A DNA stretch of 64,000 nt from IMG/VR virus record IMGVR_UViG_3300042402_002641, positions 62,001-126,000 of that record. One strand, 5' to 3'. The position numbers and the translations under genes are program-made. The notes under the pieces were generated by a model that had not been told where the DNA came from, made no database searches, and saw only the letters and a program-made list of their open reading frames with translations. The stretch's first letter is position 1; the number at the start of each line of letters is the position of its first letter. This document shows positions 7,473 to 28,270 of the stretch, piece by piece.

Positions 7473-7550
<78 letters not shown>

Positions 7551-7570
7551 CAACGCAGCAGCACAGCAAT

Positions 7571-7646
7571 CTGACCGTAGTTCAGGGGATAGAACAACAG
7601 CCTTCTAAGCTGTGGGTCGCTGGTTCGATTCCAGCCGGTCAGGCCA
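7571..7646 (+). tRNA. tRNA-Arg(TCT), encoded CCA
   Basis: Acceptor CTGACCG/CGGTCAG, anticodon arm ACAGC-CTTCTAA-GCTGT, T arm GCTGG-TTCGATT-CCAGC. Confidence 0.92.
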
Positions 7647-13658: not shown

Positions 13659-14867
13659 ATGGACCCAATCATAGAGAAACTAACAACTGCTAGAGTAGGA
13701 CTGTTGCTCAAAGCACCGTTCTTCGGCAACATGGCAACTCGTATGAAGTTGATTGATGCTTCAGACTGGTGCCCTACCGCCGCAACCAACGGTCGTGACT
13801 TCATGTATAACAAGAAGTTCGTAGAGAAACTTTCTGTTAAGAAACTAGAGTTCCTGTTCGCACATGAGATCTGTCATGCCGTATTTGATCACTTTGGTCG
13901 TTTAGGTTCGCGTATTCCACAACTGGCGAACATCGCACAGGACTACGCTGTGAACCAGATCCTGGTAGATGAACGCATTGGTGAGAAGATCACTGAGGTA
14001 AAAATCTGCTATGACGCCAAGTATCGTGGATTGGCCTGGGAAGAGATCTATGACGAGCTCTTCGAAAAAGCAGAGAAGATCCCTATGGAACAACTGCTGG
14101 CACAACTAGGTGATCTCCTAGACGAGCACATCAAAGAAGAAGAAGGTGCTGGCTCGGGTGGTGGTGACAAGACCAAAGACGGCAAGGGCAAGCCCTCGTT
14201 GACTAAAGAAGAAGCCGAACAGATCCGCGATGAGATCAAGAACGCCATGATCCAAAGTGCCGCGGCCGCTGGTGCTGGTAAGGTGCCCGCAGGTATCCAA
14301 CGCTTGATCAAGAACTGGACTGAGCCTAAGATGGACTGGCGCCAGTTGGTGCAACAAGAGATCCAAAGCATTGTTCGCAATGACTACTCCTTTCAGCGTG
14401 TGAATCGCAAGAGTATGCACAGTGGTGCTATCTTGCCAGGCATGAAAGAAGCAACTACCATTGACGTGGCAATCTCAATCGATATGTCAGGTTCTATCGG
14501 TGATGAAGATGCAACTGCATTCCTCAGCGAGATCAAGGGCATCATGGACCAGTACGAGGACTTCAAGATCAACCTGTGGTGCTTTGACACCGATATCTAC
14601 AACTGGAAACAGATCACACACGACGAAGCTCATGAACTGGTAGAATATGAGCCACAGGGCGGCGGTGGCACAGACTTCGAAGTCAACTGGACCTTCATGG
14701 AAGAGAATGGTATCCAGCCCAAGAAGTTCATCATGTTCACAGACGGCTACCCATGTGGCGGTTGGGGCAACGAGGACTACTGCGACACGATCTTTATCGT
14801 CAAAGGCAATGAGAAAGCAGAAGCACCCTTTGGGCAGACTGTGATCTATGAAAAAGAGGCGGCGTGA
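13659..14867 (+). CDS. vWA domain plus putative metallopeptidase (DUF2201-like), partner of the MoxR ATPase
   Basis: TAATNG, HExxH (AHEICH), MIDAS DMSGS, GGGGTDF, FTDG. Confidence 0.88.
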   Translation: MDPIIEKLTTARVGLLLKAPFFGNMATRMKLIDASDWCPTAATNGRDFMYNKKFVEKLSVKKLEFLFAHEICHAVFDHFGRLGSRIPQLANIAQDYAVNQILVDERIGEKITEVKICYDAKYRGLAWEEIYDELFEKAEKIPMEQLLAQLGDLLDEHIKEEEGAGSGGGDKTKDGKGKPSLTKEEAEQIRDEIKNAMIQSAAAAGAGKVPAGIQRLIKNWTEPKMDWRQLVQQEIQSIVRNDYSFQRVNRKSMHSGAILPGMKEATTIDVAISIDMSGSIGDEDATAFLSEIKGIMDQYEDFKINLWCFDTDIYNWKQITHDEAHELVEYEPQGGGGTDFEVNWTFMEENGIQPKKFIMFTDGYPCGGWGNEDYCDTIFIVKGNEKAEAPFGQTVIYEKEAA

Positions 14868-20107: not shown

Positions 20108-20147
20108 ATTGGTTGACAGTTTGGCAGTTCAGTGTTATAATACACAC

Positions 20148-20384
20148 ATGACACAAACACAAATAGACAACACCCTACAGTGGACCGGAGCAGCGGCCAT
20201 CATCGCCATGCACGTACTCAACGCAGCAGGCCCCGAGGCTTATCCCTGGAACATCATCGCAGCTTTCATCGGAACTGTTGCATTCCTTTCATGGACCATC
20301 CGTGTGAGAAACCTGCCGCAGTTCACGGTAAACGTGGTAGCATTAGCCATAGGCTTTGTAGGGTTATATCGAGCGTTTGGTTGA
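20148..20384 (+). CDS. Small multi-pass membrane protein
   Basis: Three hydrophobic segments; ATG 6 nt after TATAAT. Confidence 0.65.
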   Translation: MTQTQIDNTLQWTGAAAIIAMHVLNAAGPEAYPWNIIAAFIGTVAFLSWTIRVRNLPQFTVNVVALAIGFVGLYRAFG

Positions 20385-20416
20385 CACATTGGCGTTTTGG
20401 TGTTACAATAGATACA

Positions 20417-20630
20417 TAGACAGTTAGGAAAGAGCAAAAGGTTACCTACACCGTTAGGTACTTAGAGGGTTAGGACAGTGGCGACGGTCACGCTCAATCT
20501 AGGTACATGAAACAGGGCAGTGATGCTCGGAGAAGCGGCGGATCTTGTAGGCAGTAATGACGGTACAAGCCCTTGTGGAGACGGTCCCTGGGGTAGACTA
20601 CATGTTCCTTTGCTTTTTCCCAACTGTCTA
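20417..20630 (+). ncRNA. Unidentified structured ncRNA (~215 nt)
   Basis: Dedicated promoter TTGACA(20381)-17-TACAAT; ~24-bp closing helix 20417-20441/20607-20630; several internal helices; no RBS-led ORF. Confidence 0.65.
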
Positions 20631-20702
20631 ACAGCCAGGTTGACAACTAGCCAAATTAGTTGTATAATAGACACATACAAACAAACATTAGGAGCGAACC
20701 CA

Positions 20703-26051: not shown

Positions 26052-26750
26052 ATGTTTGGAACAAATTACACAGGCGGCGCTGTCCTGAATTATAGAAGCG
26101 CCGAAGAAATCAACTCGGCCATGGGCAGAGTCTACGGCCACATGAGTCTAGCAGTTATTGTCAGCATGTTGGTAAGTTACTGGATCGGTACCAGTCCAGA
26201 ACTTCTTCAGTTCTTTTTCACAGGAGTGTTGAAGTGGATCGTGATATTCGCACCATTGGCTGCGGTGTTTGCAGTCAGTTGGATGTTGGCTACAAACCCC
26301 AGTAAATCTGTAGCACAGTTGTTGCTGCATGGGTTTGCTGCTTTGATGGGACTGAGTTTCTCTATGATCTTTGCGGTGTTTAATATGGGATCGATTGTGT
26401 CAGCATTTATGGGTGCAGCTGTCTTGTTTGCTGTGATGAGCGGCTACGGTTATTTTACCAAGACCAGTCTCGACAGCCTAGGAAAATTCCTGTTTGTGGG
26501 ATTGATAGCTGTGATAATTGCCAGTGTGATTAATATCTTTATTGGATCAACTGTGATGCAGATGGTGATCTCATCCCTAGCGATTCTGGTATTTCTAGGA
26601 CTTACTGCCTACGACACACAGCAGATTCGTCAACAACTGATGGTAGAAACTTCACCCGCTGCGGAAGTCCGAGGAGCACTGAGTCTTTACATGGACTTTA
26701 TCAATCTGTTCCTAAATCTTCTACAGTTGTTTGGGGATCGTAAAGAATGA
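26052..26750 (+). CDS. Bax inhibitor-1/YccA family membrane protein
   Basis: About seven TM segments; TAYDTQ, ALSLYMDFINLF. Confidence 0.92.
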   Translation: MFGTNYTGGAVLNYRSAEEINSAMGRVYGHMSLAVIVSMLVSYWIGTSPELLQFFFTGVLKWIVIFAPLAAVFAVSWMLATNPSKSVAQLLLHGFAALMGLSFSMIFAVFNMGSIVSAFMGAAVLFAVMSGYGYFTKTSLDSLGKFLFVGLIAVIIASVINIFIGSTVMQMVISSLAILVFLGLTAYDTQQIRQQLMVETSPAAEVRGALSLYMDFINLFLNLLQLFGDRKE

Positions 26751-28270
26751 ATATAACCATAGTTGGTGGTGGTACGGCTGCGTGGACCGCAGCCGCATTT
26801 CTGATCCGCAATCGACCGCAACACACCTATACCATTATCGAAAGTTCCAGCATCAAGACCATTGGTGTAGGCGAAGCTGCAACAGGTATGCTCAGTGGTT
26901 TGATACAGCAGTTAGGTATCGATAAATGGGAGTTTATGCAGAGAACAGATGCCTTGCCTAAGTTGGCGATAGATTTTCAAAATTGGAGAGGCGACGGCGG
27001 TAGATATCTTCATCCCATCGACAGCAGTTTTTCTTCTAACAGTTTCATAGATTACACTGTTTATCATTCAGTGGCTGCAAATCAAAGTCTTTCCTCAACC
27101 AGCCGAAACAACATGCTGGTTGATTTGGGTCTCAGCAATATCGCATGGATCAACAATCAATTTGAAGAAATGGGCAGTCTCACATGGGTAGTTGACCCTG
27201 CAAAGCTGGCAGACCTCCTTAGAGAATATTGTATCAGCGAAAATGCCATAGTGATAGATACCACAGTAGATGAAGTTGTGATAGAAAATGGATACGTAAC
27301 TGGACTTGTAACTGACCTCGGAACTCTTACTGCAGATCTGTTTATTGACTGCACTGGCAGTGCCCGAGTTCTGTCTTCTAAATTAAACTCCAAATGGATC
27401 AGCTATGAAAAATATCTGCCAGTGAACAAGGCCATACCGTTTCGTCTAGAATACGATACCGCAGATCGCGAATCCACAGTGACCTGCAGAGCCATGAACA
27501 ACGGATGGATGTGGGCAGCTCATACTAGACACAGAATCGGTAGAGGCTATGTGTACAGCGATCGATTTGCTTCGACTGAAGATATTCTACAAGAACTCGA
27601 AGAACATTTTCAACAAAAAGTAATACCAATTAAAACCATTGATTTTGATACCGGAGTTTGTGAATCATCATTTAACGCCAATGTGTTAACGTTGGGACTA
27701 GGTGCTGGGTTTCTTGAACCCATGCAGGCTACCAGCATACATGCTAGCCTAGTGCAAATCAGCGACTGGGCCAATCTATGTCTCAGCGGCAGTGTTGAAG
27801 CCACTGTGGATCCCGTTGTTGCCGCAGTTTATAATTCAAGAGTTAACAATTTATACAAGGACATGATGGAATTTGTGGCCATACACTATGCCACAGATAG
27901 ACAAGACACAAAATTTTGGAAATTTGTCAAGGAGGAATTAGATCGTCCTGATAAGGTCAAAGAAATGATTGCTCTAGCCAAGAAAAGACTAATTAGAAAT
28001 GATGATTTTGCACAGTATCTAGGATCAGCCGGAGCTCCGTTATGGATCTATTCAATGGCTGGACTAGGACTGTTTGACCCAGAAGTATGCAGGCGTGTTC
28101 TGACAGAATACAATTACAATTTTGATCATATCCAGGGAATCAAACAGGCACATCTTGAAGAAATTTTAAAATATAAAAATCAAATCTTTACACCTACAGA
28201 TCTAAATAATTTTTTAAAAAATAGTGTAAAAATCAAAGATGGTAATTTTGAATTGAAAAAACATGATTGA
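26747..28270 (+). CDS. Tryptophan-halogenase-family flavoprotein
   Basis: VGGGTAAW, IGVGEA, K in DALPKLAIDF, DLFIDCTG, GWMW, GFLEPMQATSI. Confidence 0.88.
   Translation: MNITIVGGGTAAWTAAAFLIRNRPQHTYTIIESSSIKTIGVGEAATGMLSGLIQQLGIDKWEFMQRTDALPKLAIDFQNWRGDGGRYLHPIDSSFSSNSFIDYTVYHSVAANQSLSSTSRNNMLVDLGLSNIAWINNQFEEMGSLTWVVDPAKLADLLREYCISENAIVIDTTVDEVVIENGYVTGLVTDLGTLTADLFIDCTGSARVLSSKLNSKWISYEKYLPVNKAIPFRLEYDTADRESTVTCRAMNNGWMWAAHTRHRIGRGYVYSDRFASTEDILQELEEHFQQKVIPIKTIDFDTGVCESSFNANVLTLGLGAGFLEPMQATSIHASLVQISDWANLCLSGSVEATVDPVVAAVYNSRVNNLYKDMMEFVAIHYATDRQDTKFWKFVKEELDRPDKVKEMIALAKKRLIRNDDFAQYLGSAGAPLWIYSMAGLGLFDPEVCRRVLTEYNYNFDHIQGIKQAHLEEILKYKNQIFTPTDLNNFLKNSVKIKDGNFELKKHD

Follow-up and report, generated by a model that had tools for sequence, protein, structure and literature searches.

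Phage tRNA clusters have been associated with orphan RNAs that are stable and structured, the precedents being T4 species 1 and 2, GOLLD and ROOL. The two T4 molecules (rnaC and rnaD) are stable non-coding RNAs of 119-139 nt whose function is unknown and which directly adjoin a same-strand tRNA gene in the phage cluster. GOLLD and ROOL are complex multi-junction RNAs of 500-800 nt, also without a known function, that were first seen in lake metagenomes; they occur in phages and prophages, are common in phage DNA and often lie beside tRNAs. Large structured RNAs with covarying helices and invariant junctions have repeatedly proved to be ribozymes, ligand sensors or ribonucleoprotein scaffolds, and new ones are rare. 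Two other systems are close in architecture: YrlA, a bacterial Y RNA-like molecule found in some phages (PMC4201824), in which the 5' and 3' ends form a long stem around a structured module, and the processing stems of rRNA operons, in which a helix of ~25 bp, free in sequence and with its pairing kept, flanks a conserved RNA, with tRNAs in the same transcript.

Here we describe a virus-restricted structured RNA, widespread in IMG/VR (at least 118 contigs), that provides a third well-defined case of the link between phage tRNA clusters and orphan stable RNAs, beside T4 species 1/2 and GOLLD/ROOL. It resembles the T4 species, though not in size, as a non-coding RNA without a known function that can adjoin a same-strand tRNA, yet homology to them was rejected: a covariance model of the RNA (R1, described below), run with filters off over the T4 tRNA region (68000-75000), returned only noise, with a best score of 9.7 bits for a short hairpin elsewhere. 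T4 rnaC ends in a T-arm-like hairpin; neither a T-arm nor an acceptor-like end is seen in our RNA. As for GOLLD and ROOL, both are in Rfam and give no match here; our RNA is ~170-245 nt long, with an unrelated consensus. Like YrlA, it encloses a structured module in a long stem made of its own ends, but it lacks a match to the Rfam YrlA model and a T-arm or D-arm mimic, and its own genome (79% complete) yielded no match to Ro60/TROVE or RtcB, so that a Y RNA or YrlA identity was also rejected. The resemblance to rRNA processing stems extends to an abundant transcript of a relative (run X3, below) that lacks ~14 bp of the outer helix; unlike in those operons, the enclosed RNA is not ribosomal, and there are no cleavage data. 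No RNase III gene was found in the own genome (79% complete), hence a host enzyme would be needed for processing of the stem. The RNA occurs in two expression modes, as a unit of a tRNA array or in an early promoter cassette, so that its biogenesis and function could be tested directly with a cultured host-phage pair, and it could be relevant to the means by which tRNA-rich jumbo phages take over translation or protect it.

A conserved structured RNA in an early promoter array

The window, i.e. the whole stretch of DNA that was analysed, comprises 64,000 nt (bases 62001-126000 of a 280-kb IMG/VR virus record, 79% complete). The terminase of this phage is of the T4-like type, with 54% identity to that of the Pseudomonas jumbo phage PA5oct, and is more distant from those of Phosso, CBB and GAP32. 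On the + strand, between 7109 and 22453, there are 18 perfect TTGACA-N17-TAYAAT sites (0.18 expected by chance), each heading a short cassette. One of these near-consensus promoters, at 20381-20409, has no RBS-led ORF and no credible gene behind it. Transcription is expected to start at ~20416-20417, 7-8 nt past the -10 element, which coincides with the start of a long closing helix. Nothing resembling a terminator was found between this helix and the next promoter at 20640, and the RNA and the next cassette are therefore not separated by one. A first-pass annotation, made from sequence alone, had claimed a promoter (TTGACA 20381, TACAAT 20404) without an RBS-led gene, a start (~20416) at the first base of the closing helix and a following promoter 10 nt after the 3' end; all three claims held upon a promoter scan and an ORF check, the helix having 23 bp and the next TTGACA starting 9 nt past it. 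The features of the window copy are:

20381-20409, + strand: sigma-70-type promoter of the RNA, with -35 TTGACA (20381-20386), a 17-nt spacer, extended -10 TG (20401-20402) and -10 TACAAT (20404-20409)
20416-20632, + strand: structured non-coding RNA of 217 nt, end-to-end match of covariance model R1
20417-20441 (5' strand) with 20607-20630 (3' strand), + strand: P1 closing helix, 23 bp, one bulge and one mismatch
20440-20446, + strand: GGUUACC, invariant in 81 of 81 distinct homologues, reaching from the final pairs of P1 through the UUA junction into the first pairs of P2a
directly after the P1 5' strand, + strand: UUA junction strand, between P1 and P2a
20445-20450 with 20546-20551 (TGTAGG), + strand: P2a, long-range pairing
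20451-20455 with 20537-20541 (GGCGG), + strand: P2b, long-range pairing
20458-20506, + strand: P3 hairpin, with an outer stem (20458-20470 with 20492-20506) and an inner stem (20478-20482 with 20487-20491)
20507-20511, + strand: AUGAA junction strand from P3 to P4, A-Y-G-A-A and near-invariant in the family
20515-20528, + strand: P4 hairpin GGGCA-GUGA-UGCUC, variable in length in relatives and usually GNRA-capped
20554-20559, + strand: GUAAUG junction strand, UAAUG being invariant in the family
20559-20606, + strand: 3' domain, in which P6 (20559-20565 with 20599-20606) encloses hairpin P5
20569-20579 with 20585-20594, + strand: P5 hairpin, whose loop holds GACGG (20580-20584)
20640-20668, + strand: promoter of the next cassette (127-aa gene, ATG 20703), outside the RNA

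Folded on its own, the segment 20416-20632 reaches -77.1 kcal/mol (z = -3.2), and none of 200 shuffles folds as well. The overall shape is that of a closing helix enclosing two multi-helix junctions. P3, capped by a GACG loop (20483-20486; GNCG across the family), and P4 lie inside P2, joined by UAGG, AUGAA and a short third strand (consensus YG) before the P2b 3' strand. The positions that do not vary in the family (GGUUACC, A, CC, UAGG, A-GAA, G--GG, U-G and UAAUG) are located at the two junctions, while the sequence of P1, the length of P4 and above all the 3' domain, the most variable of the family, do change; P1 differs in sequence between phages and retains its pairing. Two of the helices proposed in the first-pass annotation, GTACTTAGA/TCTAGGTAC and GTGGC/GTCAC, held and are backed by homologues. 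Three internal ones (TACCTA/TAGGTA, ACAGGGC/GCCCTTGT and CTTGTA/TACAAG) lacked support, and comparison of homologues replaced them with the long-range pairings CCTACA/TGTAGG and CCGTT/GGCGG, with GGGCA/TGCTC closed by a GUGA loop, and with a local pairing of GCCCTTG... around a GACGG loop.

Homologues were first obtained by fetching loci through the two flanking proteins, followed by blastn and nhmmer. An alignment of five sequences already contained 17 compensated pairs and was the source of model R1. We then scanned IMG/VR with a pattern made of the invariant motif GGTTACCNANNCCNNTAGG, N85-115 and TAATG, which matched at least 119 contigs; R1 confirmed 118 of the 119, the remaining one (L151) being a chance match. 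Together these give 87 distinct family sequences, window copy included. The family is defined by GGUUACC-N-A-NN-CC-NN-UAGG ... AYGAA ... UAAUG, with the long-range P2a/P2b pairing inside a closing helix, and the window copy qualifies: it matches R1 over the full length of the model and has all the invariant positions.

Covariation in this family was strong. Across 81 distinct copies, 91.9% of 4637 pair cells were in standard pairing (64.4% in shuffles), 1206 cells were changed on both sides (372 in shuffles) and 55 of the 65 pairs showed compensatory changes. The covariation score was 0.559, compared to 0.160 in shuffles (none of 500 reaching 0.559) and 0.04-0.07 with slid partners. The 5' strands of P2a and P2b, for instance, show UA/AU, CG/GC and GC/AU swaps, and helix 7 is 100% paired. 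The alignment used here was fitted to the model structure, a bias in its favour, yet an independent MAFFT alignment showed the same swaps in P2a, P2b, P3 and P5; this and the slid-partner control argue that the signal is real. In an all-against-all mutual-information scan the top column pairs were almost all predicted pairs. The same scan gave no evidence of a pseudoknot, suggesting only a register shift in P4 and an extension of P6. The functional strand is the + strand, since R1 scores the window copy at 194.7 bits on + and 26.5 on -, and one U-G pair stays the same in all 81 distinct copies.

The only ATG ORFs of the element on the + strand have 16 and 24 codons, both without a Shine-Dalgarno sequence, and no ORF is conserved across homologues. 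These data show that the region encodes a conserved structured non-coding RNA and not a chance fold. A functional structured RNA occupying one cassette slot, with no assignable family, is what the first-pass annotation had proposed, and the proposal is supported by covariation, strand asymmetry, the absence of an Rfam match and the copies found in RNA libraries. Of the checks it had named, the covariation analysis on phage homologues (81 distinct copies) was strongly positive and the Rfam search, run on the window copy and three divergent homologues, gave no family match; a conserved translated small ORF, which it had given as a refuter, was not found.

The gene upstream of the RNA (within 20113-20384) encodes a 78-aa membrane protein. 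Its ATG, at 20148, lies 7 nt after a -10 hexamer (20136-20141) and has no RBS, and its mRNA is probably leaderless. Its stop codon falls within the -35 element of the RNA promoter, and its product has a weak, sub-threshold match to DUF6552 and nothing more. This gene is the commonest upstream neighbour of the RNA (32 of 85 loci). No informative Pfam or PHROG match was obtained for the 78-aa, 88/89-aa and 127-aa neighbour proteins, and no fixed protein partner gene was found across loci, the neighbours being ORFans that vary from one locus to another.

Distribution and relation to known RNAs

At the gathering threshold, Rfam 15 (4227 models) detected in the whole window only two tRNAs, located elsewhere. 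The element itself and three divergent homologues, searched with E values as permissive as 10, gave nothing above noise (9.7-13.4 bits, against cut-offs of 41-100). A blastn search with four variants against 50,697 cultured-phage records returned no match, and R1 found no real copy in five cultured jumbo phages (PA5oct, Phosso, CBB, XacN1 and Atu_ph07). Likewise, a pattern scan of the genomes of 185,579 species (one each) gave 21 matches, none of them confirmed and all due to chance. The genome of the window phage (79% complete) carries one copy. The exact window sequence is present in many lake and river DNA metagenomes of 2016 to 2024. The RNA family is thus likely to be confined to a clade of uncultured aquatic jumbo phages.

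Several other identities were considered and dropped. A tRNA, tmRNA or tRNA-like nature was rejected, as ARAGORN calls the adjoining tRNAs and tmRNAs and never the element. So was 6S RNA, given that no 6S model matches and that the fold is branched with two junctions, not a long bubble-containing hairpin. Resemblances of single motifs to RNase P RNA, the SRP Alu domain (UGUAAU), the group I core (GACGGCAC), the T-box sequence, 16S helix 45, the hammerhead core and k-turn or loop E motifs were discarded because the helix order does not fit, the resemblances lack covariation and no model matches. For a retron, DRT or group II non-coding RNA, which would be expected beside a reverse transcriptase gene, the evidence is only partial: a protein-family scan covering the window neighbours and not the whole genome gave no match, the 25 largest clusters of neighbour proteins within 2.5 kb have a median length of at most 234 aa, and what lies directly beside the RNA is either a tRNA or a protein gene for 45-234 aa.

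The family is absent from Rfam and from the literature consulted, and we consider it likely to be undescribed. The closest resource, likewise built on IMG/VR, lists 8,495 candidate structured RNAs (Fremin and Kyrpides 2023; PMC10690425), and its text describes no family with this structure, context or distribution. [quoted passage not shown] This pattern would fit the present RNA, and the two may be the same, though their identity is unverified.

Genomic settings and transcripts

The stand-alone early cassette described in the first-pass annotation turned out to be only one of the contexts of this RNA, for in about half of the relatives it is a unit of a tRNA array. According to ARAGORN, a same-strand tRNA lies within 10 nt of the RNA at 49 of 118 loci, and within 300 nt at 13 more. 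The arrays around it hold up to 31 tRNAs per locus in the DNA examined, with usual inter-tRNA spacers of 3-10 nt. Some copies fill a tRNA-to-tRNA gap exactly (Glu-RNA-Asp in L155, Ser-RNA-Ser in L112). Others lie behind two tandem promoters, so that in these array-type phages the RNA heads the tRNA operon. Genes for tmRNA are found in or beside the tRNA-rich loci, at 0.4-1.3 kb from the RNA in L159, L196 and L119. The remaining copies (51 loci) are far from tRNAs, in early promoter cassettes, often behind the gene for the 78-aa membrane protein and followed by varying small ORFan genes, with or without a promoter in between.

On the tree of the RNA, the context label switches at least 6-10 times. 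Close relatives differ in arrangement: the contigs of L025/L153, L028/L116 and L029/L106 contain the 127-aa gene that follows the RNA in the window, yet have the RNA in a tRNA array. Sister cores, e.g. those of L114 and L132, bear different P1 helices. From these switches and from the differing P1 helices on sister cores we conclude that the core is a portable module and P1 a context-specific adapter.

Several traits of these loci were noted along the way. In L144, L160, L171 and L201, the 231-236 nt upstream of the RNA hold two tandem sigma-70 promoters, each with a terminator-like hairpin (AACCCTACA...TGTAGGGT) ~30 nt upstream and a conserved small hairpin after it. The tmRNA calls (ARAGORN) are in L110, L119, L159 and L196, with the tag ANDEQFALAA in several. 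The tRNA arrays of L144, L171, L140, L109 and others show recurrent tRNA-free gaps of ~80, 125-145, 190-205 and 250-450 nt, which might hold promoters or further non-coding RNAs. Where the promoter is absent (L040, L054, L034, L101-L102 and L123), a conserved hairpin (CGAGTTTAGAGACTCG or GAGAGTTTGGAGACTCT) and then CCTAAGCA precede the RNA; this hairpin could be a terminator or a processing signal. Finally, in L095, L103, L143, L149 and L167 the 3' part of the RNA, including the P1 3' strand, is itself the TTGACA-N17-TATAAT promoter of the next gene, which encodes an 88/89-aa protein.

The exact window sequence was found, in part, in six RNA runs. Matched to the window, run X1 has an exact contig of 103 nt and run X2 one of 143 nt, 103 nt of it on the element. 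In RNA libraries the depth for the window phage is 4-6 over the element and 2-5 over the flanking genes; as these values are close, DNA carry-over cannot be excluded for this phage. The copy of a relative, of the L114/L132 type, was found in a riverine metatranscriptome (run X3) as a 218-nt contig at a word depth of 134.6 vs 2-4 for flanking genes. Matched to window positions 20437-20560, this contig has its pieces permuted, and the first 30 nt (reconstructed with the help of L114) are identical to the last 30. The contig therefore closes into a branch-free cycle of 188 nt in which the 3' part of the RNA runs on into the 5' part; only ~12 nt separate the inner P1 strands, and ~14 bp of the outer helix are missing. 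No tandem or permuted DNA copy that could be the source of the cycle was found in IMG/VR and JGI metagenome contigs. At the least, this shows for the relative's copy an abundant discrete RNA with its ends inside P1, ~11 bp from the junction.

A bolder reading of the same contig is that the mature RNA is a covalently closed circle of ~188 nt, proof against exonucleases. Cleavage of P1 ~11 bp away from the junction would leave two juxtaposed ends, which would then be ligated. Resting on one metatranscriptome contig, this reading is improbable as it stands. It is equally possible that a linear RNA of 188 nt had its ends joined by an RNA ligase or a reverse transcriptase during library preparation, and the matter is undecided. 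No genes for Rnl1, Rnl2 or RtcB ligases were found in the own genome (79% complete), the search for Rnl1 being without a positive control.

How the RNA may be made and act

On balance we lean toward a stable RNA with a complex fold that acts in trans, and whose ends come from tRNA processing in the arrays and from the promoter and P1 trimming in the window phage. The structure of the RNA, its conservation, strand and contexts, and its presence in RNA libraries are shown; the processing route and an action in trans through junctions that bind a protein or a small ligand are inferred, and no partner has been identified. The functional part would be the core of ~170 nt built on the two multi-helix junctions, with the invariant unpaired GGUUACC, UAGG, AYGAA and UAAUG, and with peripheral hairpins carrying GNRA and GACG-type loops. 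The long P1 would be an adapter that joins and protects the ends and probably serves as a processing stem. Where the phage has a large tRNA array, the RNA would be transcribed together with the tRNAs, as a unit of their polycistronic transcript, and set free by the cuts that also release the adjacent tRNAs, i.e. those of RNase P on the downstream tRNA and the 3' processing of the upstream one. In the window phage, with two tRNAs only, the core would have been relocated into the early promoter array, where the host RNA polymerase would transcribe it from the first base of P1; without a terminator behind the RNA, its 3' end must be produced by trimming back as far as P1 or by a cut inside P1. 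Points against this proposal include the lack of an identified partner, the varying ORFan neighbours and the RNA-library depth for the window phage, close to that of its flanks; in addition, in a few relatives (L203 and L216) P1 has only ~4 bp and the core lies directly before an RBS, an arrangement that a cis-acting leader would also fit.

The first-pass annotation had suggested a decoy, an antitoxin mimic, a 6S-like RNA or a ribozyme. The 6S-like option is unsupported and the others remain suggestions only. A ribozyme could cleave itself and help to cut the tightly packed tRNA transcripts, or act on tRNA precursors. HDV-like and hammerhead ribozymes beside phage tRNAs have been reported to cut tRNA transcripts, and the RNA does adjoin tRNAs with spacers of 0-5 nt; its invariant unpaired nucleotides cluster at the junctions and its peripheral helices are GNRA-capped, as in catalytic cores, and the cyclic 188-nt contig points to an abundant species with defined ends inside P1. 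Yet none of the known ribozyme families gives a match, not even at E up to 10, the size (170-215 nt) is far above that of known small self-cleavers and covariation reveals no pseudoknot. Moreover, the RNA is retained in phages with only 2 tRNAs and far from tRNAs, and spacers of 3-10 nt are general between the tRNAs of these arrays, so that abutment is not special to the RNA. On sequence evidence alone, we regard this explanation as unlikely.

Just as doubtful is a cis-acting leader or riboswitch-like sensor controlling downstream transcription or translation. In its favour, aptamers typically have highly conserved junction nucleotides enclosed by a closing helix; in L203, L216 and the L095 group the core either is followed by an RBS after 6-29 nt or extends into the next promoter, and in array phages the RNA often heads the tRNA operon just after two promoters. 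What would be expected of such an element, a fixed position before consistent genes together with an expression platform, is not seen. Downstream neighbours differ (88-aa, 127-aa and 78-aa families, tRNAs), in the window copy and at least 13 further distinct ones the RNA is separated from the next gene by a full consensus promoter, there is neither a terminator nor an RBS-sequestering platform, some copies sit between two tRNAs without a spacer, and the X3 contig is a discrete species. Two further alternatives were already disfavoured and are very unlikely. The first is an element acting at the DNA level (a small mobile element with terminal inverted repeats, or a signal for replication or packaging) in which the RNA fold would be incidental: the terminal inverted repeat of 23-25 bp and the repeated relocation do resemble a miniature mobile element, but the G-U pairs seen in the covarying internal helices, one of them an invariant U-G, would be A-C on the opposite strand, R1 scores the + strand ~170 bits higher, each genome has one copy, and it is P1 that varies with context and the core that stays, whereas transposon ends would behave the other way round. 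The other is a small protein encoded by the element, for which one could invoke the ATG ORFs of up to 53 codons in some homologues; against it, the window ORFs have only 16 and 24 codons and no RBS, the indels of homologues are not multiples of three and are located in loops, and substitutions are compensatory across helices, not synonymous.

By ARAGORN, the genome of the window phage has tRNA-Met, tRNA-Arg and one tmRNA call only, the latter outside the window (G000:C1:26573-27023). The two tRNAs and an HNH endonuclease gene (window 7473-7643 and 13659-14867) belong to the same early promoter array as the RNA. Further downstream, at 26747-28270, an ORF of 507 aa matches a PHROG family annotated as tryptophan halogenase (E = 1.3e-97), an unusual cargo for a phage.
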